From positions 434,001 to 498,000 of the forward strand of contig OZ218958.1 of NCBI GenBank assembly GCA_965112735.1: DNA of 64,000 nt, given 5' to 3'. Position 1 is the stretch's first letter. Every line of letters begins with the position of its first letter. Positions 20,952 to 35,200 of this stretch are shown in pieces. Source of the stretch: Phaeosaccion multiseriatum (lineage: Eukaryota > Protista > Ochrophyta, other classes). The translations under genes were made by a program, and so were the position numbers. The notes below the pieces were generated by a model. That model searched no databases, was not told the DNA's origin, and saw only the letters and a program-made list of their open reading frames with translations.

Positions 20952-21323
20952 CCTTACGTAATCATCATGCCGCACGGCTATGCCAAAACCAAGTCAAATG
21001 CCAATCGCGCGTAATCCCCCGGTGGGACAGTGGCTTATGCCCCCTGAAGAGGTCTGTGATCCTGGACCATGCCCTTGTTTACAGCTGGCCGTGCTCTGGA
21101 GTTGTCGGAGAGTGAAAAAAAAAAAAAAAAAAGCGAAGGGAGAAAAGTCAATGAAAGCCCCGGGGGATCCCCCTTTCTCCTCCAACACAGAGAGAGAGAG
21201 GTGGGAAAAAGTGCGGGAGAAACAGAGAGAGGAGCGGGAGCCAGAGCCCCCAAACTGAAGGAGGGGTGGGAAGGACGAGTCCTTACGGGCATCGGGGGCG
21301 GTGGGGGGCTGGAGGGCTCTTGG

Positions 21324-24300
21324 ATGGCCTTCGTGCCCTCTGCAAGCCCGCGACTGGCAGCAGCGGCGCCGCTCCTCCAGAGGCAACCGCAGCAGCAGCT
21401 GCTGCAGCAGCGATATGGTGGACGCGTGGGAAGCGCACGCCACTACTCCCAGCCTTGTGGTGGGCTCAGTAATGCAGCTGCTTCCACTCTGGGAAGGAAG
21501 CGGCGGCGGCCCACCACAAGCAGCCGGAGCAGTGGTGAGGCTGGGAGCGGGAGGTGTCAGTGCACGTGGTGCAGGAGGCGGAGGCGAGGGCCGCGAGGAC
21601 CGAGCTTGTACGTGGATCACTCACAAGAGGAGGGTGGTGGAACAGAGGATGGTCGAGTGCCGCACTTGGCGTCCGGCGGAGGCAGTGCTGCGGCCTTCAA
21701 TGTGGGGGTAGTGGGAGGCTTCGAGAAGGGGAGGCAGCAGAGGGCAGATAGCGGGGAGGAAAGAGGCGGTAGGAGCGGGGGGGGGGGAGGGGCAAGTCTG
21801 CAACATCATGGCAACTACGCAGAGGAGAAGGAGGGCGGGGCGGAGAATCAGGAGGCCAAGCAGCAGGATGAAGGAAGGCCAGGGGCAAGCAGCAACAGAG
21901 CCAATGCCCACGCGCCAAGAAGGCGACAGCAGTGGCAAGAGAAGGATGCTGCGACGCAGTGCCAAATGAGCAAAAACATTGCATCCCTGGGCAGGAAGGG
22001 CCGGTGGAGGGAGGTAGGCAGCGTGCTCCAGAGGGCCAAGGCGAGAGGCGTGCAGCCCAACCTAGTGTGCTACTCGGCGGCCATCACCGCGGTGGGGCAG
22101 CGCTGCGGGAGGTGGAGGGAAGCACTCGGCCTGCTGGAGGAGCTCAAGCAGCACAGCAAGCAGCAGCAGCAGCGAGACGAAGTAGACGGCCGGTCAGGGT
22201 CAGGATCAGAGCCAAGTCTCCGGCCTGACGTGGTGTGCTACAATGCGGCCATTGGGTCCTGTGCGCGCGCCGGGGAGAGCGAGAAGGCATTCGAGCTGCT
22301 GTGGGAGATGAGGAGGGAAGGGCTGCTTCCCAACGTGATTAGCTACAACTCAGTGTTGGACGGGTGCGGCAAGGCCGGGGACTCGGCGCTGGCAGAGAGG
22401 GTCATACACGAGATGAAGAGCTACGGGGTGCGGGCAGACGAGAAGAGCTACAGCGCGTGGATCTCGGCCTGCGGGAAGGACGGGGCGGCATATCGGAGAG
22501 CCCTTGCCGTGATGACAGAGGCCCAGCTGGAGGGGGGTCTCCGGCTCGACGTGGTGACGTACAACTGCCTCATTACGGCGTGCGCAAAGTCGGGGGAATA
22601 CGACAAGGCGCTGGCAATGTTCAGGCAGATGCAGGCCTACGGTCTCCGCCCCAACGTGTACAGCTACAATGCCCTTCTCAAGGCGTGCGATCGGGCGGGC
22701 AACTACCGTCAGGTGCTGCTCATCTTTAGAGAGATGCGCAAGCTTGGGCCCAACGGCAGCGAGGAAGGCGGCGGGGGGGAGGGGGGCGGCGCGGTGCCCA
22801 CGGTAGTCACGTACAACACCGTTCTCGCGGCTTGCAGCAAGGCAAGGGAGCACAAGATGGCCGTGTTTTTGGTCAAGGACATGATTTCACAGGGCCTTGC
22901 CCCCACCGTCATCACCTACGGTACTTTAATCTCGGTCTTTGCCAACACGGGGCAGTGCGACGAAGCGCAGAGGGTGTTTGACGTGATGAAGGAAAGGCGC
23001 ATCCGCCCGAATGTGGTGTGCTACAGCTCACTCATCACCGCCTACGGCAGAGTGGGGCAACACGAAGACGCCCTCAGAGTGGTGCGGGACATGAAGCGCA
23101 ATGGCGTACTGCCCAACACTGTGTGTTACAATGCCCTCATTACCGCCTGTGGCAACGCGGGCGCCTATCGCCAGGCCATGGAGGTGTTTACAGAGATGGT
23201 AGGCGAGGGGTTCCAGCCAGACGTGGTGAGTTACAGCGCTCTCATGGCGGCGTGTGGCAAGGCGGGGGCCTACGACAAAGCTTTGGATATGCTTCGCCAG
23301 TTGGAGACTTTGGGGGGAGGAGGAGGCAGCCGGGGGGGGGTGCCAGTGAGCGACGGGGGCACTGCGCTTCGTTCTCGCGCGGTTCGGCCCACGGGGGCTG
23401 CTGCTACCGGGCAGGTTTCTGAGGGCGACGCGGTGGGGGAGGAGGAGGGGGGCGTGGGCGGTGGGCAGGAGCAAGAGGCAGACCAACAAGACGCAGGATG
23501 GCATGTCCTCCCGTCTGAGGAGGAGGTGGAGGAGGAGGAGGAGGAGGAGGAGGACGGTGTGCCGAGCAACGAGCAGTGGCAGCAGTGGCGGCCGCTGCCG
23601 AGCAAGAAGCCCACGCGGGAGTGGTTCTACAGCGCCGCAATCGACGCCCTCACCTGTTGTGGTAGGCTCTCCGCCGCTGATGCGCTCTATGCAGAGGCGG
23701 TCAGTGCGGGCGTCTTTGTGCATTGGGTGCGCCCGCCCTCACCCTCGGCAGGTGCGGCAGTTGGTGACACAGTCGTAGCAGCAGGAGGAGGAGTGGGAGA
23801 TGGCACAGGACTAGGTTACAATAGCGATATCAGTGGGCGAAAGAAGGTGAAGCAACGGCGGGGGAGTGCGAAGGGGATAGGGAAGAGGAGGAGAGGAAGG
23901 CCTCGGCTGCAGGTCATGGGCTTGCACGGATTCAGTGAGGGCACCCTGCAGGCAGCGCTGCGTCACGTCATTTCCGTGGAGGGAGTGACGGGCGAGGTGC
24001 ACGTGGTTACGACTCGCGGCAAGGGCAAGGGCGAGGGAGGCAAGGAGGAGGGCAGCAGCGGCTTGGCGGGAGAGTCAGGTGAGGGGATCGAATACTCCGG
24101 TTCGGTTGGGGGCACTGCGGCTTTGACGGAGGCGATGGCTGCTGGTGCTGTATCGCCAACTGCTGCTGATGGTGCTATGGACGGCGGCTGGAAGAGCGGG
24201 TCTGTGCAGACATACCAAACCGGAGACCTCCGCCTGCAAGAGGACGTGTGTGAGGCGGTGCTAGGCTATGTGAGCGGCCCTCTGGCCCTTCCCGCGGAGG

Positions 24301-24488
24301 TCAGGAAGGACAGAGTGGTGTTTCGAGTGGGCCCAGAGGAGGAGGCGGTGTTTCGAGTGGGCCCAGAGGAGGAGGCGGTGTGTCTGAGTCCTGACACCAA
24401 CGTGAGCTTCGTCGACCGCCCGGAGGAGGCATGGGCGCTGGCCTCTCGCTTGATGCGGGGGGGGGATCGCGCGGCCGAATCCGAGTAG
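21324..24488 (+). CDS. P-class pentatricopeptide-repeat protein with C-terminal SMR-like domain (PPR-SMR); start codon uncertain (ORF open from 21069)
   Basis: About 12-13 35-aa motifs, e.g. PDVVCYNAAIGSCARAGESEKAFELLWEMRREGL. C-terminal 'MGLHGFSEGTLQAALRHV...VHVVTTRGKG' resembles the SMR LDLHG...ITGxG pattern. Uninterrupted 3.4-kb ORF. Confidence 0.9.
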   Translation: MAFVPSASPRLAAAAPLLQRQPQQQLLQQRYGGRVGSARHYSQPCGGLSNAAASTLGRKRRRPTTSSRSSGEAGSGRCQCTWCRRRRRGPRGPSLYVDHSQEEGGGTEDGRVPHLASGGGSAAAFNVGVVGGFEKGRQQRADSGEERGGRSGGGGGASLQHHGNYAEEKEGGAENQEAKQQDEGRPGASSNRANAHAPRRRQQWQEKDAATQCQMSKNIASLGRKGRWREVGSVLQRAKARGVQPNLVCYSAAITAVGQRCGRWREALGLLEELKQHSKQQQQRDEVDGRSGSGSEPSLRPDVVCYNAAIGSCARAGESEKAFELLWEMRREGLLPNVISYNSVLDGCGKAGDSALAERVIHEMKSYGVRADEKSYSAWISACGKDGAAYRRALAVMTEAQLEGGLRLDVVTYNCLITACAKSGEYDKALAMFRQMQAYGLRPNVYSYNALLKACDRAGNYRQVLLIFREMRKLGPNGSEEGGGGEGGGAVPTVVTYNTVLAACSKAREHKMAVFLVKDMISQGLAPTVITYGTLISVFANTGQCDEAQRVFDVMKERRIRPNVVCYSSLITAYGRVGQHEDALRVVRDMKRNGVLPNTVCYNALITACGNAGAYRQAMEVFTEMVGEGFQPDVVSYSALMAACGKAGAYDKALDMLRQLETLGGGGGSRGGVPVSDGGTALRSRAVRPTGAAATGQVSEGDAVGEEEGGVGGGQEQEADQQDAGWHVLPSEEEVEEEEEEEEDGVPSNEQWQQWRPLPSKKPTREWFYSAAIDALTCCGRLSAADALYAEAVSAGVFVHWVRPPSPSAGAAVGDTVVAAGGGVGDGTGLGYNSDISGRKKVKQRRGSAKGIGKRRRGRPRLQVMGLHGFSEGTLQAALRHVISVEGVTGEVHVVTTRGKGKGEGGKEEGSSGLAGESGEGIEYSGSVGGTAALTEAMAAGAVSPTAADGAMDGGWKSGSVQTYQTGDLRLQEDVCEAVLGYVSGPLALPAEVRKDRVVFRVGPEEEAVFRVGPEEEAVCLSPDTNVSFVDRPEEAWALASRLMRGGDRAAESE

Positions 24489-25114
24489 AAGGAAAGAGGT
24501 GGGGGAAGAAGCTTCTGCGTTCACCTGAGGGGTGCAAGACTTCTTGGGAGCTGCATGCGTGCGTACGTGCGTGCATGTGTGTGCGTTGCCGGTTGCCGGG
24601 TGCAGCCCGAACAAGAAACAAGTGTTTCTTGGATGGAGTGGGTGCCCCCTCTCGCTCCCTGCCGGTGTCCGTCGAGCTGAGGCCTTTAGGGCCTTTGCCT
24701 TGGTGACGAAATAATACCACGTTCTTCGAATAAGAGTACAAGCCATCCTCATCTTGAGTACGAGTACTTGCCCAAGTTGTGTCGGTTACACAAATCATCG
24801 CTCCTCAACAGTCTCTAATTAATTTAATTAAAGTGCCGCGCGTCAACATCGGTACTATTCGTCGGGGTCCATGAACATAAAAGTGTACAGCTCCCCTTCC
24901 TGCTTTGCTCGTTCTGCCTCTCCTCCTCATCTTCCTTCTCGCCCTCCCTCACCCACGTTCGTTGCCCTTTCTCTTCTAACGCCTCCAGGCGTCCACCGCA
25001 ATATCCTAAAAGACAAAATCCCAAAAAACCTTGGCCCTTCCAACCCCCCCTCCCCCACCCCTCTTTCAACTCACTTAACCTAACCCACCACCCAACTACC
25101 GAAAACTAACCCAG

Positions 25115-28007
25115 TTAACTAATCACACACCCACGGCAGCACCCACCAGACCCCACCTGGGGCGGCCCGTCAGCATGAGCGCCCTTGGGAGACTTGCTGC
25201 CGCCCAAACCTCTGACCCCGCCTTCACTCCCCTTGCTCTCCCCTGCCTCCCCCGCCACCGCCAGCTGCCCCTCCAGAAAGTCAATCCTCTCCAAAGCTTC
25301 GTCCAGCTCCATTTGCAACTGTGCCTTGGGCTTCCCTGCCAGCCTCGCCGCCTTCTCATGCCCCGGGTAGATGGAGTGGGCTCCCATGAGGTAGGTCAGA
25401 GCCACCAGGTGGAGGTTGCAGAGAGGGAGGCGGTCTTCGTCTGGCTTGGTGAGCTCGCCGCAGGTCATGCTTGACTTGAGGAGCGTGACCGAAGGCTGCC
25501 ATTTGGTGGATGGTGGGTTTGGTTGGTTGGTCAGTTGGTTGGTTGGTTGGGTTGGGTTGATTCTTTGTTGCCGAGGAATGAGCAGTAGCTGGCAGACGAG
25601 GAGACAGTCGGGGCGCGCTTACCAGACTACAACTACTCACCGTCGAGAGGGTGTCGATCAGAGTCACGGAGTCCAACGTACCCCCCAGGAACTCAATCAA
25701 CATCCTATGGTCATGTAGGCTCAGCGTGGCGTCAATAAAGCCGTGTAGGCCCTGAGTGGGCTGCACCTCCTCCTCGGCGGCCTTGATGTGCTTCTCGAAC
25801 ACGGTCTGCACGATGAGCTTGGGGTCCGGCATGTGGGTACCCCAACCTACCATACGCATGCCGCCCTCCCAGAAGCCTAAATACACACACATGAACACAT
25901 GGAACACATGGAACACAAGGAGAAGTGAGACGAGCGTCTCTCAGCCCTTGCACGCAAAGCGCAAAAGCACAATTCCTACAAAAGCTCTCTCTCTCTGGTT
26001 TGGGTGAAAAACTGGTGAAAACCATTCCAATACATACACGCATATACACGGCATCCTCGAAGAGAATAGAGCACAAGCACAACTCACCGACTTCTTCGTC
26101 CACCTGCGGCGTAACCTGGGGCACCACGGAAAGCATAGCAGCGTGGAAACCCGCTTCCTGCGTCACCTCGCCGCTGGGGCCCTTGGCCGGGGCGGTGAGG
26201 ACCTGTGGGTACGCCGCGTTGCCCTGGAAGGTTACCACTGTGTACATGTCCAGCCCGACCAGCTAAGAGTTTGTGTCGAGTTTCAATGTGGGGGGTTGGG
26301 AGCGGATCGGGCGGGACATGAAGAACGAGGCGGAAAGAAAAACGGGGACAGAGGGATTGAGGGATCGGGGATGGTGTTCATAGGGTGAAGGAAGCTCCCA
26401 GGGATGATATCAAGTAGTCTTCATCCTCACCCCGCCGGCTCTTCCCCTCCCCTCGCACTACACACTGCACACTACACCCCAACCCAACCCACCGTACTTC
26501 ATGTCCCACCCACCACCCACCACATCCCACCCCCCTACACGCCCCATCCACTGCCATCCCACTTCCCTCCCTCACCTCGGCGATGGAGACCTCCATCTGG
26601 CACCATCCCCTCGTGAGGTACTCGTTGACGTCACTCATGCGCAAGTGCTTGCCATGCAGATCGAGGTGAGGGCGCACCGCCATGCCCTGCAGAGACTGGG
26701 CAGAGGGGTTGGCCAGCGTCAACACTGTCTCCTCCCCCTCCCCCTCCCCTTCGACCTTGACCTCCTCTCCTCGCGCCTCAGCGTCAGCAGCCATAAGCGC
26801 TGCCATCTCTGCGTGATCGGCCCTCATGGCAGCGTCCGTAGCCGCCCCTGCCTGCGCCAAGGCCAGGCGCGCCTCCTCTTCCGCCGCCTCTTCCTCGTCG
26901 TAGTCGCTCTCTTCCTCCTCCTGCTTCATATCTTCACCCTTCTTACCACGTGCAGCATTGGCGGCCGCCGCTCTCTTCATCTCCTGCTCTTTCTTAAGTA
27001 TCTTGGTCTGACTCCTCACGTCGGAGTTGACCTTCTTGCCGGCGAGGATGGTCTGCAACACGAGCAGTTGGTCATCCGACAGCACGGAGCCGAGGGCCAC
27101 TGACTTGGGTCGGGGAAGGGCCAGGAAGTGTGTGCAGCGCAGCATGGCGGGCAGGACATTGGCCATCACCTGTTCATCGGTATATAGGGAGGGAGAGAGG
27201 GAGGGACGGAGGGACGCCATGATCAGCGGACTTCGATGCACATGAAAAGAGACCATACTCGTGTTGACGAGGGGTGCCCATGCTCTCTCTTCATGCAGCC
27301 TAACGCAGCCAACTGTGTACGGTACGCGATTTGGCATGGCACGAACACAGCGGGCTCACCACAGAGGGAGGAATCAGGTGCACAAACAACCAGACACCCA
27401 ACCAGACTTGCCTGCGGGTAAGCTGGAGTGCCCTTGGTGCTGGTGTCGTGGCAGGTAACGTCGATCCAGAGGTAGTCCATCTCACCTCCGACTTTCTGTA
27501 ACCGGGGAAGGAAAAGGGGGGCAATGGGTCAGTAAAGCCGACCGCTGCTGAGGAGGCCCCATGCATGACATGTCCTGTATGCAGTCGTCTTCGATTCATC
27601 TTACGTATCTTCCGTATTCTATACACTCTTTATGGAATCGTACCTGCGTGGAGAAGAAGTGAAAGAGCCTCGAGTACTTGCTGTGGAAGTCGTCATCAGC
27701 ACAGTTCTCACTGTTCCAGCGGTGCGAGATGAACAGAATGTTGGACCCCACTGGCACCTCCGGCTCGGGCGTCAGCAGGCCCATGCGTTGGGCAGACGCA
27801 AACGAGAGCAGCTGTGTTGTGGTGCGTAGGGTGGGGTGGGGTGCGAAGGAGGGGGGCAAGGGGGGGAGGGAGCAGGGGAGAAGACCGAGTCAGTCGAGTT
27901 AGGAGCTGCTCAACTTGTTATCCCCCCCCAATACAAGTGGATAGGTTGGGCCCTCTCCGCCTTGGTTGAGTCATCCTTCTACCCACGCACCCACGCACCC
28001 ATCCAAC

Positions 28008-28038
<31 letters not shown>

Positions 28039-31000
28039 GTCCGTTGGCGCTATCCATAAAGTCCTTGCGGGAGATGAAGAAGCTCATCTCGGGCTTGAAA
28101 CCCCACAGCACAGGGTCCATCTCGTCCTGACACCACGTAAAAAGCATATAGATGGCAGCAGATGGATGGATGGCCGGACCGTCAGAGAGAGAAAGAGAGA
28201 GCAGAGAGGACGACCCAAATGACAATGAGAGAGAGAGAGCGATAGAGAGACATGAGACAGACAACCGGCGAGCAACAAGATGGACGGAGGACGAGGCACA
28301 CACACGTACAATGAATCTGTGGAAGCGCCGGTACCCTGCGTTGGCGTCCGCGGGGATGATGCGGTGGTGCGTTTGCTTCCGCCGAGGGCTAATGGGCGGC
28401 TCCCCAAACACAGCGTCCTCCCCCTCCAACTCCTCCTTCTCCTCCACCTGCAGGACATTTTATAGTTGATGGATGATAGGCAGGTACAAGTGCAAGTGGT
28501 GCAAGCAGTACGGAAAGAGATACCGTGAGACAGACCTTCTTGGGGGAAGGGGACACGGCGAATGCGAAAAGCGCCCCAGAACATGCACTTACAAGTACAA
28601 GGCACATATAGGCTCACCCACACACAACTCTCGACCCTCCATCCCTCCACCGATTCACATCCATCCATCCCTTCCCATCCACATCCCCCCCTCCAGGCTT
28701 CTCACCTTCTCTTCCTCCTCCTCCTCCTCCTCCTCCTCCTCCTCCTCCTCCTCCTCCCCCTCTTCCTCCTCCTCCTCCCCCTCCTTGGAATCCTGCTGGG
28801 CGGGTGACTTGAACACATCAAGCATGGCCTTGTCCGTCTTCTTGGAGTACGCATCGACGTTGTTGCGCTTGTTGGCAGCCAATTCGCTCTCGTACACGGC
28901 CGTGCTCGCCTTGCGGTCCTTGCCTGAGACCGCACGCAGCAGCGGTGGGAGAGGGGGGGGGAGGGTTGAGATGACAAAGCACCTACACATTCACAGCCCC
29001 CCTTTAAGATACCCAGATGTCCTCATACACCATTCGCCCCTCAACACCAGATCTTCTGGTCCGTCTTGACACGTGGAACCCCTACCCACCCACCCACCCA
29101 ACCATTGACTTACTACCCATAATCATCACCTGCAATGGGCTTAATGGAGATGGAGGTGTCCAAGATTCCCGTAAGGTACTGCACCACTCCCACGTGGGGC
29201 CCTCCTGCAAATGCCTCCATGAGGGGGGTGCGGTCGGCGGAGTTCTTGGCAAGGATGCGCTCACGAGGAGAGGTCGAGCACTCGGTCGTCAGCAGCATCT
29301 TCGCACAGGGCTGGAGAGGGGGGGGGGAGGGAGGAAGGGAGGGAGGGCGGCGAAGACGGAGGGGAAGGAAGCGAGAGTCAAGTCTCCTGATGCGCCTGAT
29401 GCGGCCTTCCTTCCGTCCTCCATCGCCTCTCACTCACGATACCCACCAACCCATTCACTCCTGACACACACCTACTCACTCCAACCCAACCACAGCCCCC
29501 CACCCACTCACCAGGTTTCCGTTCCTGCATGCGTGGTGCAGAGCGATGTCTCCTTGCGCGTCCCTGGCAAGGATGTTAGCGTCGGCCCCCAGCAACACCT
29601 CGAGTACTCCATCGGAGCCGCAGCTCGCAGCCACAGCGGCCGCTGAGCGACCCTGTCGGTCCTTGAGCTGCACGCACACACACACACACACACACACAAA
29701 GGGGATTAGAGGGAGGCATATGCAGATGTGTATGTATGACCACGAACAAGGGCATGGGGGGGGAGGGAGGAGGGAGTTGGTGGTGGTGAGAATGGGAGAG
29801 TTCGAATCACTTCGCACACACTTACCTCAACGTCAGCGCCAAAGGTGAGGAGCATCTTGGCCATCTCCCTGTACCCCCCATTGGCGGCCACATGCATGAG
29901 GCTAAAGTCCTCCGTGCCGTGTTGGTAGTCCAGGTGCGTAATGCACGACTCGAGGCAGTACAACACGTAGTGAGAGTCGCCCCGCCCCGCCGCTTCCCAC
30001 ACGGTTTCTGGGTTCTAGGGTGGGGATGGAGTATATGAGATAGGATGGGATGCGGTGGGTTGGGTGGGGTGGGGGTACGGTTGGGGTGGGGTTGGGTCGG
30101 GTTGGGTCGGGTGGGATCCTCCTCCTTCCACCCCTGCCTGCCTTCCTCTCTGCCCCCCCCCCTCTCTCTCACTCACTCACCGTAACTCCCTCTCCGAATA
30201 CGCCCCCCTTCTGCCTAAGGTAGGCAAGCACCTGGTACTTGTGATTGGACGTCTCCTCGGTGTGGTCCAGGCCCCTCTCCAGCGCGTAGTCCACGGCCGT
30301 CTTACGTCCTGACGCGCCGCCCATGAAGTTGATGCCTGAGGTGTCAGAGTGTGAAGGTTGTGTGTGTGTGTGGGTGAGCGTGTGGGTGTGTGTGAGCGTG
30401 TGGGTGTGTGTGAGCGTGTGGGTGTGGGTGTGTGTGGGTGGGTGTGAGCGTGCGCGTGGGTGTATGTATGTACATGTGGGTGTGTGCGTGTGTGTACACA
30501 TGGCCTCCCCCCCCCCTTGAGTGCTGAAACTGAAACTGAAGGCTTCTGTAACGTACGATGCCTCACCTTCCGCTCCGATGCCGATCTTCTCCACAAAGAG
30601 ACGCACGACGTTGAGCTGGATTGAGGGGAGAGGGGCAGTAAGTCAGCAAGGATGGCAGTAGGTTGCGTGGCTGTTGCTCAAAAGCGCTTCCCCCTCTACC
30701 CCACGGCGGGGACAGCAACAACACGTAACCGCATGTAAGAGAGACAGAGCGACCGATACACACCTGTCCCTCGAAGGCGGCGGTCTGGAAGGCGTTGCGG
30801 GGGTCCTTCTTGGGCCCCAGACACCACATACCCGCGCCTGTGAGACAGAAAGGCAGGAAAGTAAGACACAAGCGTACAGGAATATGGGCAGACAGGCAGG
30901 TAGAAAGACAGGCAGTTGGAGAGACCAGAGCGTCGGGAACGAAGGGGAGTGCGGGGGGGAAACAGTTCAGTGCAGGCAGGAGCGGTAGAAGGGTGTGATT

Positions 31001-31784
31001 GAAGCACCCTCTTACCCTCTCCTTTTGCTTACTGACTTACTCACCCTTGGTGATGAGCTCCTTGACCACCTCCTGGTGCCCGTTGGCGCAGGCGTGCATG
31101 AGGCCCGTCACGTCATCGAAGTCGCAACTGTCGATCTCGAAGTTGCGGGAGTTGATGATGGAGCGCACCACGGGCAGGTTTCCGGTCTTGCATGCGTTGA
31201 GGTAGTCCACGACCTGGTGGAGGAAGATGGAAGGGGGGGGGGGGGGGGGAGAGGTGGGGGGTGGGCAATGGGAATTGGAAGGGTAACCCAAAGCGAAAGC
31301 ATCCAGTACATGGGAGGAATGGGGGGCTAGGTGGGTCCATGGAGCAGGTGAAGGGAGCAAAGGGCTTTTTTTACGGCAATCAAGAAATCAAAGTGGGATG
31401 GAATGGAGAAGGGGGAGAGGACGTTGGGGAGGCGGCTGGGACAAAACACAAGACAGCACCAGTCTTGCCCATCGCTAGGGTACGAGGTACCACAAAGAAA
31501 ACTTAGATACACAATGCTGCACGCCGAAAGGAAGTGATTAGTCCCTTCACGTGTTTTTTGGCCAACCGCCATGCCTTGCCCCTGATATCGCATGGGGAGC
31601 TCCTCAGGGATGCAAGACGCACAATCCCACTGGACTGCGCCATCTTTCCCCCTCCCTCACTTCCTTCAGGGCACTACGCACAGAGCCAAAGCAAAGATAG
31701 AATCCCAAACCCCAAAGGTGGGGCCTCACTCACCTTGGCGTTCAGCGGCTCCGGCCCACGCCGCCTCTCCCTTCGAGGAGGCAT
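25115..31784 (-). CDS. Multi-exon (~17 exons) ankyrin-repeat + HET/TIR-like domain protein with C-terminal CCxxCVIS (CaaX) motif
   Basis: Exons join in frame at canonical sites, with one GC donor. Exon 1 31734..31784 is MPPRRERRRGPEPLNAK. ANK exons 29130..31213 include TGLMHACANGH, SLMHVAANGG and ALHHACRNGN. A poly-Glu linker follows, then ILFISHRW (~27730), YLWIDVTC (~27465) and YLTRGWCQME (~26600). The last exon ends GGCCRGCVIS* at 25115. Confidence 0.8.
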
Positions 31785-32245: not shown

Positions 32246-35200
32246 ATGCTGCCGTCCGCAGCGGCAGCACCGGCAGCGAATGGAGGCCCACACTGTCGTA
32301 CTAATGGCGCCCCTCTGCGAGTGTTGCTGCTGCTGCTCCTCGCTTCCATACACGCAGTCAACGCGTTCACGGTGAGACGGGTGCAAGAGTTGTCGATACA
32401 GACATTCTGGCTGTCACTCTTTCTCGTGCTTGGCTTCGGTGGGGCGCTTTTCGCTGCCTAATTGCAGCAAAAATAATCGCCACTACTCATCATGTGTGTG
32501 CTTGTTCTTCGTGTCTACCTGCCCTGACAGGGTTTTACCGGTGTCAAGGTGAACCTGCAGCACAATTCAAAGCCATACTCTACCGCAAGGTCATGGAGAG
32601 CAGCACTGCCTCCGACCGGGGGGAGCAAAGCCAGCCGCCGAGTAAGTGCAATTACAAAGAGAAGGGGGAGCAACAGCCCATTTAGCTGTCTTAACGGTTA
32701 ACCCCCTGATACACGCACTGCCCCCCCTATCCCTTCGTCACGTCCAAGCAGCAGCGCGTGTCGCCCCTCTCGATGGCCTCCGTAGCCTCGTACGAGAATG
32801 GAGATCAAGCGAGTGTCGCAACGAAGGAGGCTCCGGAGCAGCAGCAGACCACCACCAGTAGCAGCAACAGTATCGCCACCACCACCCTGGACAGCAAGCA
32901 GGCCCCCAAGACGGCCGCCACTGGCAGCGGCAAGTACAGACTGCTCAAGCCCAAGCTGGCGGGCTTCAGGGCGGTGACGGACATGTGGGACTTCCTCAGC
33001 GAGGAGGTTGGCGATCAGCCCTGCCTCCGTGACAGCCTGCACGGTACGATGATAATGGCCACGCACATAGGCAATTGATGAGGGACGGAAGAGGGGACGG
33101 AAGAGTATACGGGAGCGCCTCGAGAGGGAAGGATAGGGAGGGAGAGATGAAGGGGAAGGGTCGCCATGATGACCCACCTGCGTCGAAGGCAACTGATGGG
33201 AGGTGGAAGAGGGAACGGAGGGCAGATCTTTCCCGCCATGTCCACTGCAGCTTGCGATTTCAGTGTGTCAAAACTGATGTTAGTTGTGTGTGCCCCTGGT
33301 CGTGTTCCAAGCCTGCCCCTACTCCCCCCCCCCCCCCACCTCCTCCTCCTCCTCCTCCTCCTCCTCCTCTTCCCCAGGGGACGAAACGGTGGAAATGACG
33401 TACGACGAGGCCAAAGCCGGCGTGGAGAGCATGGCTGGAGCGATGCAGTCTCTGGGGGTCGGCAAGGGTGATTGCGTGTCTATATTTGCAGAGAACTCGT
33501 ATCGCTGGCTGCTGGCAGAACAGGGGATTATGAAGGCGGGCGCATGCAATGCCGTGAGAGGCATGGCAGCCCCCCTGGAGGAGCTACAGGTGAGGGAGGG
33601 ATGGAGAGAGGGGGGGCAGGGAGGGATGGAGGGAGAGTGGGTGAGGGATGGAAAGGAACGAGGGAGGAAGGAAGAGGGAAGCGCTTAGCAACCCCACATC
33701 TTACGCCCCCCCCCCGCCCCGTATGTTCATCCGCTCTCTCTTTCTCAATACCCTCTCTGTTTGTCACCCTCCCACGCTCCCTATGTACACCCCACTCACC
33801 CACTCACTTGCAGTATATTTACGACAACAGCCGGAGCAAGGGTGTGTTGGTGGAGAAGGGGAAGCTGCTCAAAGATCTGATGGGGAAGGGGGGGCTTAGT
33901 GGCGAGAATGGCCCTCCAGAGGTGAGTGAGTGAGGGAGGGAGCGGGTGAGTGAGTGGGCGAGTGACTGGGCGAGTGAGGGAATGTTTGGTAGGAGAGTGG
34001 GTGAGTGAGTGATTGAGCGAGCGCACCAGTGAGTCGTGACGCCCTTCCTTGAAAGCGATAGGCCGACCGATCCAGGCAACCCATGATTTGCTTTACCTTT
34101 GCCCTGTCACCTGCCCCTGCTTTGCTGTGCTCCCTCGTTACTTGCCAATGATGCATTCCCTCCCTCGCAGCACGTCAGGTCGCCAGTTCGCCCCTGACTC
34201 TGACTCTGACCCTGACCCTGACCTTGCTCGTGCTCCTCCCGTCTCCCCGCTGAACGTGGGCCCCTCCTGTGTCGCAGTTTTACATGATAATGTACGCCGA
34301 GGGGAAGAGTGGCGATGACTGGAGGAAAGAGTTAGGCCTACCTGAGGGGACGAAGGTGGGTCACTTCAATTGGGAGAGCAGACATATGCGGACAGTGGCG
34401 CTGGGGCTGGTGGGCGACTGTGGTTGCGGTGGCGCGTGTGTTGGGGGGGGGGGGGGGGTTGTGTCACATTGCATAGCCGCTATTGTTGCCTTTCCTCTCC
34501 TCCTCCTCCTCCTCCTCCTCCTCCTCCTCCCCTTCCAAAGCCGCTCATGTTCCTCTTTCTGGCTCTAGTGGCAAGGCACTGCTCTCCTCTGTCGGCGCGG
34601 CTGGTTGACCCCTCTGCCCCAGGGGATCCATAGCTATTCCCCTGAGCAGCCCCTTCTCCTTCTCTTCCCTCCCTCCCTCCCCTCCCTCTCTCCCTCCCTT
34701 CACCCTCCCCTCCCCTCCCTCCCTCTCATCTGTCTCCGAAGGTTGTGACTTTCAGAGAATGCCTTGACATGAAGCATGCATTCAGCCCTGTGGAGATGGA
34801 TCCGAGCATGACTGCGGCAGTGATTTACACATCGGGCACTACAAGTAAGCCCAAGGGGGTGGTGCTCAGACACAGCAACCTCCTACATCAGGTGCGCACA
34901 GAGGGGGATACATATAGAGAAGAGAGAGGGACAGACGGAGAGGCAGCACACAGCACACTCACCACCACCTGCGATGGTACGTCTCTCACCTCTGCATGCC
35001 TCTGGGCCTATATGCCTCTACTGCCTGCATGTCTCCAGATGAACGAGAACAGCTTCGACCGCAAGGGCCGACAGCTCAACGATCCGTGGGTGGGGGACAC
35101 ATTCCTCACCATCCTGCCGTGCTGGCACATCTTCGAGCGGACAGCCGAGTACTTTTGCCTCAGCAGGTGGGTACTGAAGCGAGAGAAGGAGAGGGAGAGA

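Follow-up and report, generated by a model that had tools for sequence, protein, structure and literature searches.

This analysis concerns a 64,000-nucleotide stretch of contig OZ218958.1 from the stramenopile alga Phaeosaccion multiseriatum (GCA_965112735.1, positions 434,001 to 498,000), referred to here as the window, which is eukaryotic in character with a G+C content of ~58%. On its minus strand lies a gene of 17 exons (31784..25115), obtained by manual splicing and checked by script, which encodes 1,035 amino acids (aa) in 3,108 nucleotides (nt) and ends in TAA with no internal stop. The predicted protein joins N-terminal ankyrin repeats, a linker, a middle domain resembling the HET (heterokaryon-incompatibility) domain of fungi, and a C-terminal CaaX box (Table 1). 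The same span had been put forward in an initial annotation made from the sequence alone, and when rebuilt independently its two ends were identical. That the gene is invisible in the list of open reading frames (ORFs), as was also claimed, proved correct: the three motifs of the HET-like domain are split over three exons and three frames, and both the ORF list and Pfam are blind to the domain for this reason.

The 16 introns measure 145-520 nt, with phases that are consistent throughout. Fifteen are of the GT-AG type, their donors mostly GTGAG or GTAAG, and one, intron 13 (27170-27411), is GC-AG, with the sole non-GT donor (CAG/GCAAGT, the usual GCAAGT form); all acceptors consist of AG with a preceding pyrimidine-rich tract. 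Codon usage was scored as log-odds for each exon and intron, using a table trained on an adjoining single-exon PPR ORF of 1,139 aa. Exons 2-17 scored positive in frame and negative in both other frames, with an in-frame G+C content at third codon positions (GC3) of 0.71-0.93, and log-odds were negative in 16 of 16 introns. Exon 1, with 51 nt, is too short for a judgement by codon bias and is the only ATG-led piece that fits; no further coding was seen upstream of it on the minus strand of the window. Contigs from four DNA runs of one sample matched positions 25100-27978, which hold the HET-like and CaaX parts, with 0 differences, and the sole indel in these contigs relative to the window, at 30092, falls in intron 5. 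The window sequence is therefore regarded as sound. We infer the splicing model strongly from these features; judged by its sequence, the locus is a genuine stramenopile nuclear gene with a coherent 17-exon reading frame.

Table 1. Exons and sequence features of the minus-strand gene, with positions numbered within the window.
Feature	Positions	Strand	Description
Exon 1	31734..31784	-	ATG at 31784 and 17 codons in all; donor AAG/GTGAGT, phase 0 into exon 2; least certain exon
Exons 2-8	31213-31045, 30837-30764, 30615-30567, 30335-30181, 30014-29826, 29667-29512, 29310-29130	-	~8-9 ankyrin repeats, aa 18-342 (Pfam; repeat count by eye)
Exon 9	28706..28923	-	Linker with poly-Glu tract, aa 389-414 (translation)
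Exons 10, 11	28447-28310, 28126-28037	-	Acidic/basic linker before the HET-like domain (in-frame codon bias)
Exon 12	27644..27811	-	HET block 1, ILFISHRW (FISHRW at 27733..27716, aa 517-522)
Exon 13	27412..27495	-	HET block 2, YLWIDVTC at 27474..27451, aa 554-561; followed by the GC-AG intron
Exon 14	26576..27169	-	Helix/strand after block 2, insertion, HET block 3, YLTRGWCQME at 26620..26591, aa 758-767
Insertion in exon 14	26687..27019	-	Ala/Glu-rich in-frame stretch, 333 nt/111 aa (aa 625-735); borders GAC/GTGAGG and CTGCAG/GGC
Exons 15, 16	26262-26088, 25876-25641	-	C-terminal region, aa 773-909; codon bias positive, no Pfam family matched
Exon 17	25115..25495	-	Heptad-like stretch aa 966-991, Gly/Ser-rich tail, CC-x-G-CVIS; stop at 25117..25115

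Most of the domain arrangement described in the initial annotation was recovered. Pfam ankyrin models passed their cut-offs on exons 2, 6, and 7 (Ank_2 30.1 bits with a cut-off of 27.3, Ank 23.4 with 21.1, Ank_3 23.4 with 22.3, and Ank_4 23.0-24.6 with 22.7), and exon 8 gave a weak match, which agrees with the N-terminal ankyrin repeats that had been claimed. The poly-Glu linker lies in exon 9 as described, and the coiled-coil-like stretch is present as a heptad-like pattern in the sequence. The protein was said to contain no NACHT or NB-ARC domain, and Pfam indeed gave no match to either on any exon piece, nor is there coding upstream of exon 1 on that strand that could hold one. Three motifs, FISHRW, YLWIDxxC, and YLTRGWCQME, had been read in this order and were found so, as was the long acidic insertion before the last of them.

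The C-terminus reads GGCCRGCVIS followed by TAA (25147..25115), with the CaaX codons (CVIS) at 25129..25118 and two more cysteines at -7 and -8 from the protein end; CVIS and the stop are in frame and the DNA contigs agree, so that the terminal CaaX with nearby Cys noted earlier is upheld. Serine at the X position, as in CVIS, marks a substrate of farnesyltransferase, and a Cys pair just upstream is the usual palmitoylation pattern. In doubly lipidated CaaX proteins such as H-Ras, Cys-aliphatic-aliphatic-Ser with a Cys a few residues upstream means farnesylation and then palmitoylation. The algal protein shares this end pattern but is not a GTPase, and its lipidation is predicted. The CaaX box is canonical and a putative site of farnesylation and palmitoylation.

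The three blocks of the middle domain (ISHRW, YLWIDxxC, and RGWCQME) follow the canonical HET order, with spacing that is canonical apart from one loop insertion: blocks 2 and 3 are 205 aa apart, or 94 aa once the insertion is left out, compared to 97 aa in the fungal HET alignment. A minimal triad of S..W, WID..C, and R.W...E in this order and spacing is expected by chance 3e-8 times per protein of such composition, or ~6e-4 times per 20,000 proteins. It matches 78 of 120 fungal HET proteins and none of the 1,463 six-frame segments of the window. Three of the eight tryptophans of the protein fall within the HET blocks. Block 1 (I-S-H-R-W-N) keeps the invariant Ser and Trp of [AL]-S-[YH]-x-W-G, with the Gly replaced by Asn, and an L-S-H-R-W-G variant of this block was found in 5 of 70 reference HET domains. 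In block 3 (R-G-W-C-Q-M-E) the Arg, Trp, and Glu are at invariant positions and the Gln is shifted by one relative to R-x-W-x-x-Q-E. The invariant Ser, Trp, Asp, Cys, Arg, Trp, and Glu positions common to two HET subfamilies are all kept, which suggests that the HET-like domain retains an active or interaction site. A Glu is present in W-C-Q-M-E, while Pfam on the pieces matched no TIR family, and a TIR-like catalytic role of this residue is putative.

The insertion ahead of block 3 has a length that is a multiple of three and a GC3 of 0.71, compared to 0.86 in its flanks. Its site matches the region of the hhalign alignment, described below, that is equivalent to a variable, low-confidence loop of a fungal HET model. 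Its borders fit the GT...AG consensus, so that besides a common loop insertion the stretch may represent an exitron, an in-frame intron that is optional.

The spliced core (aa 491-832) was compared with HET references gathered from genomes and metagenomes. Prokaryotic genomes scanned with a degenerate DNA pattern encoding L-W-I-D-x-L-C-I-[ND]-Q yielded 19 loci, the good ones matching PF06985 at 50-117 bits. The search that showed these to be up to 95% identical to Cadophora proteins also yielded 120 fungal HET proteins, giving a Helotiales-type profile. In metagenomes, the pattern Y-L-W-I-D-S-L-C-I found 120 loci, and in 70 of them the HET domain is complete and free of introns; most of these domains are of the L-S-H-C-W-G type, with some of the L-S-H-R-W-G type. 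Against the hidden Markov model (HMM) of the 120 Helotiales-type sequences the core scored 1.5 bits, ranking ~11th among 3,000 shuffles, with only blocks 2 and 3 aligned, colinearly; Helotiales-type profiles of 12 and of 120 sequences did not separate the core from shuffles. Against the L-S-H-C-W-G-type HMM of the 70 metagenomic sequences, the core scored 8.8 bits in hmmsearch and came first among 3,000 shuffles. When the core without its insertion was compared with the 70 metagenomic HET domains in hhalign, 158 columns were aligned over template positions 2-182 of 186, with the three blocks in register (P 7e-4, probability 26%). Block 1 falls on LSHCWG of the HET profile, block 2 on YLWIDSLC, and RGWCQME on R-G-W-x-x-Q-E; for blocks 2 and 3 this pairing was given by hmmsearch as well. 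The score of 27.1 was reached by 0 of 250 shuffles, whose maximum was 22.5. As this profile had been selected through Y-L-W-I-D, the comparison was repeated with block 2 masked; the register was unchanged, and the score of 18.2 was reached by 7 of 200 shuffles.

One source of references requires comment. The GTDB representative metagenome-assembled genome (MAG) "Deltaproteobacteria bacterium isolate CPC1" (contigs NYXK01...) holds many bona fide PF06985 HET genes. These were rejected as bacterial genes: their identity to Cadophora and Leptodontidium (Helotiales) proteins reaches 94-95%, which indicates that the CPC1 bin contains fungal contigs. As genes of a fungal contaminant, they still served as HET references.

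In the ESM Atlas, the named cluster nearest to exon 12 is PF06985 (0.78), with the ten best named matches all in the same family or clan, and the three named clusters nearest to exon 13 are all PF06985 (0.80-0.82); by the calibration of the tool, values of 0.78-0.82 count only as leads. No usable match came from the block 3 piece. Each line of evidence for HET is weak by itself, and the lines are largely independent and point in one direction. The middle domain is very probably a true, very divergent domain of the HET superfamily, and we infer that it is a very divergent member of the fold group that includes HET, TIR, and nucleoside deoxyribosyltransferase (NDT). A canonical fungal HET domain, folded from a 60-sequence alignment, gave a model with a mean predicted local distance difference test score (pLDDT) of 82, a value for the fungal domain and not the algal protein. 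The fungal prediction, to which alone this comparison applies, resembles the NDT and TIR folds, which fits the remote homology to TIR proposed previously (Dyrka et al., 2014). A Foldseek search of the fungal model against the PDB returned nothing significant, and an Atlas shape search with it returned only fungal HET. Sequence searches of the PDB, with exon 12 and with a HET profile, also found nothing.

Several observations weigh against the assignment to HET and the role built upon it. Pfam on the exon pieces gave no HET or TIR match even at E 10, and the HMM scores of 1.5-8.8 bits, obtained with proxy profiles, lie below the Pfam HET gathering cut-off of 22.5 bits; by the PF06985 score standard (≤8.8 bits, proxy profiles), the HET-like domain is not a member of the family. 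Exon by exon, in a blind scan, the HET signal was not above the noise of six-frame segments of the window, and the best-scoring HET profile, having been fetched through the YLWID pattern, favors block 2. Block 2 itself reads Y-L-W-I-D-V-T-C and then H-D-T, in place of I-N/D-Q, although the Ile and Gln of L-W-I-D-x-x-C-I-[ND]-Q are invariant in both reference HET alignments, and the W-E-C motif found in HET after block 3 is absent. Exon 14 had 0 matches among 1.84 billion representative proteins, exon 12 found no candidate within the length limits of a word-indexed set of 5.8 billion clusters, and of 600 pattern matches to exon 12 in Joint Genome Institute (JGI) metagenomes, 0 were confirmed by tblastn. 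The HET identity given in the initial annotation is partly supported, by the motifs, their order, the hhalign register, and the Atlas neighbors; the support does not extend to scores, which are far below the Pfam cut-off, or to the I-N/D-Q and W-E-C motifs; its expected profile match to HET was obtained as a full-domain alignment in hhalign (P 7e-4) and not with PF06985 on exon pieces.

The three motifs could instead be a chance or convergent likeness, with aa ~500 to ~830 forming a lineage-specific domain unrelated to HET or TIR. This would be consistent with the lack of a profile match that is significant by family standards, with the rank of only ~11th of 3,000 given by the first HET profile, with Atlas scores that are leads, and with the lack of intermediate sequences in the databases searched. 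It is nevertheless quite improbable, given the chance expectation of 3e-8 per protein for the triad, the full-length hhalign register both with and without block 2, the proximity of two separate exons to PF06985, and a block spacing that, without the insertion, equals that of fungal HET (94 and 97 aa). The gene model could also contain an error of consequence: the ankyrin and HET-like parts could belong to separate genes, the locus could be a pseudogene that is not transcribed, or the protein could end elsewhere than in the CaaX exon. No RNA run for the organism is on record, exon 1 is without codon-bias support, one of the modeled introns is GC-AG, and exon 14 may contain an internal intron. 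A materially wrong model is nonetheless highly improbable, as the 16 introns are similar in size with good consensus sites and unbroken phase, there are 0 in-frame stops over 3,108 nt with codon bias positive in exons 2-17 and negative in all introns, no ATG-led alternative start exists for the HET-like part, and the last exon runs in frame directly to the CVIS-stop.

HET domains outside fungi have been described previously. Homologues are known in stramenopiles, haptophytes, choanoflagellates, green algae, and bryophytes, the organisms named including Ectocarpus, Thalassiosira, Emiliania, Salpingoeca, and Physcomitrella (Dyrka et al., 2014; PMC4986451). The presence of HET in algae is therefore not new, and its occurrence in a stramenopile lineage is to be expected; Pfam recognizes those homologues, but the present domain was not recognized, at least in pieces or by proxy profiles. 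The claim that the architecture was undescribed in algae accordingly holds for the combination and not for HET itself, since no ankyrin-HET-CaaX protein and no lipid-anchored HET was found in open-access literature text. What appears to be new is the joining of ankyrin repeats and HET in a CaaX-anchored protein that lacks an NLR core.

Compared with the fungal HET proteins (PF06985; Podospora HET-E/D/R, Neurospora TOL, PIN-C, and HET-6), the algal blocks ([AL]-S-[HY]-x-W, L-W-I-D-x-x-C, and R-G-W-x-x-x-E) agree in order, share their spacing once the loop insertion is removed, and match the hydrophobic helix/strand pattern past block 2. The algal protein differs in its 111-aa acidic insertion, many introns, lipid anchor, stramenopile host, and scores below the cut-off. 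Fungal NLRs of the HET-NACHT-(WD40/ANK/TPR) type likewise place a HET-type effector and a repeat sensor on one chain, but the algal protein lacks NACHT/NB-ARC, has the reverse order, with repeats N-terminal and the HET-like domain central, and adds an anchor. From the TIR NAD+ hydrolases (SARM1, the TIRs of plant TNLs, and bacterial ThsB, AbTir, and SpbK), the algal protein is set apart by exon pieces that have no TIR profile match, and, unlike for these hydrolases, an enzymatic activity is not known for any of the HET domains (PMC12881547).

Taken together, the protein is tentatively read as a membrane-tethered, one-chain sensor-effector, with an ankyrin sensor and a HET-like output and without an NLR ATPase. 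It would be a cytosolic protein held on a membrane through its C-terminus by farnesylation and palmitoylation. The binding partner of the ankyrin array would be a protein ligand or a guarded protein of the host. Once the ligand is bound or the molecules cluster, the HET-like domain would be turned on, and it would then signal or kill in the manner of fungal HET domains. The chemistry might be cleavage of a nucleotide (NAD+) via the conserved Glu of RGWCQME. In fungi, HET alone suffices to cause cell death, and a relationship to TIR has been proposed (PMC4986451, PMC10197012, PMC12881547), and brown algae show hypersensitive response (HR)-like cell death by machinery that is not known (PMC12396294). 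Two further points count against this reading, namely that no HET domain has a demonstrated enzymatic activity (PMC12881547) and that most fungal HET genes have no known role in death. Reviews as of 2025 still list the structure and activity of HET as undetermined. The output may be cell death, a nucleotide signal, or something unrelated to defense.

The main alternative is that the domain is a true HET/TIR relative but takes no part in immunity or cell death. In this lineage it would serve the everyday regulation of membranes or trafficking, as a module for interactions or small-molecule binding that is perhaps catalytically inert, and the CaaX box and ankyrin repeats would only place a scaffold on an endomembrane. 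Several observations would suit such a role: the clearest functional signal in the protein is its membrane anchor, block 2 lacks its I-N/D-Q part, W-E-C is missing, the DNA contigs showed no allelic variation, and very few of the HET genes of fungi act in incompatibility (PMC10197012). The retention of the invariant Ser, Trp, Asp, Cys, Arg, Trp, and Glu argues instead for a conserved active or interaction site, the ankyrin partner is a typical sensor module, and contigs from one sample, from which rare variants are dropped, say little on polymorphism. We regard the regulatory role as somewhat unlikely, and the sensor-effector reading is retained.

The surroundings of the gene offer some further observations. 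The PPR ORF (21069-24488, plus strand) is a single exon with acidic and Gly-rich inserts, convergent with the ankyrin-HET-like gene and ending ~630 bp past its stop. On the other side, the start of a divergent plus-strand gene lies at 32710-33685, its second piece being AMP-binding-like (acyl-CoA synthetase-type), and it shares an intergenic region of ~0.9 kb with exon 1. No paralogue of any part of the gene was found elsewhere in the window at E 1e-3, and the gene therefore does not belong to the cluster of ankyrin genes at 1.9-16 kb. Introns carry microsatellites of (CA)n or (CACACCCA)n, at 27980-28045, 29670-29705, and 30350-30500 among others, with Thr-His runs in the ORF list, and the short-read contigs break exactly at these intron microsatellites. 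Contig "joints" were considered as splice junctions and rejected, as all are on low-complexity tracts and have sides of 20-26 letters. Depth spikes at 28300-28499 and in other bins reflect low-complexity tracts repeated across the genome. The difference at 30092 is a 1-base deletion relative to the window, found in one contig in each of the four DNA runs; it lies in a C-rich tract and may be a homopolymer error or an allele.

Among the cell-death domains of fungi, HET is one of the most common, with its biochemistry and structure unsolved and its link to the TIR immune enzymes a proposed one. Brown algae and their relatives undergo hypersensitive-like death against oomycetes, for which the executioner is not known (PMC12396294). 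If the sensor-effector reading is true, a lipid-anchored HET-like protein that carries its own ankyrin sensor and lacks an NLR core would make a compact, testable candidate executioner. The case also shows that this branch of the family escapes standard domain scans in intron-rich algal genomes. A much broader proposition, which we consider unlikely and offer as speculation, is that stramenopiles related to brown algae hold a hidden, Pfam-invisible family of HET/TIR-type effectors of death or signaling without an NLR ATPase, bound to membranes via lipid anchors or MORN repeats, with swapped sensors (ankyrin, LRR, DENN) and an NAD+-cleaving activity like that of plant and bacterial TIRs. Such a family would form an independent, modular innate-immune repertoire and supply the missing executioners of brown-algal HR-like death. 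Such a protein would allow the action of HET-type domains at membranes, and a chemistry in common with TIR, to be examined.

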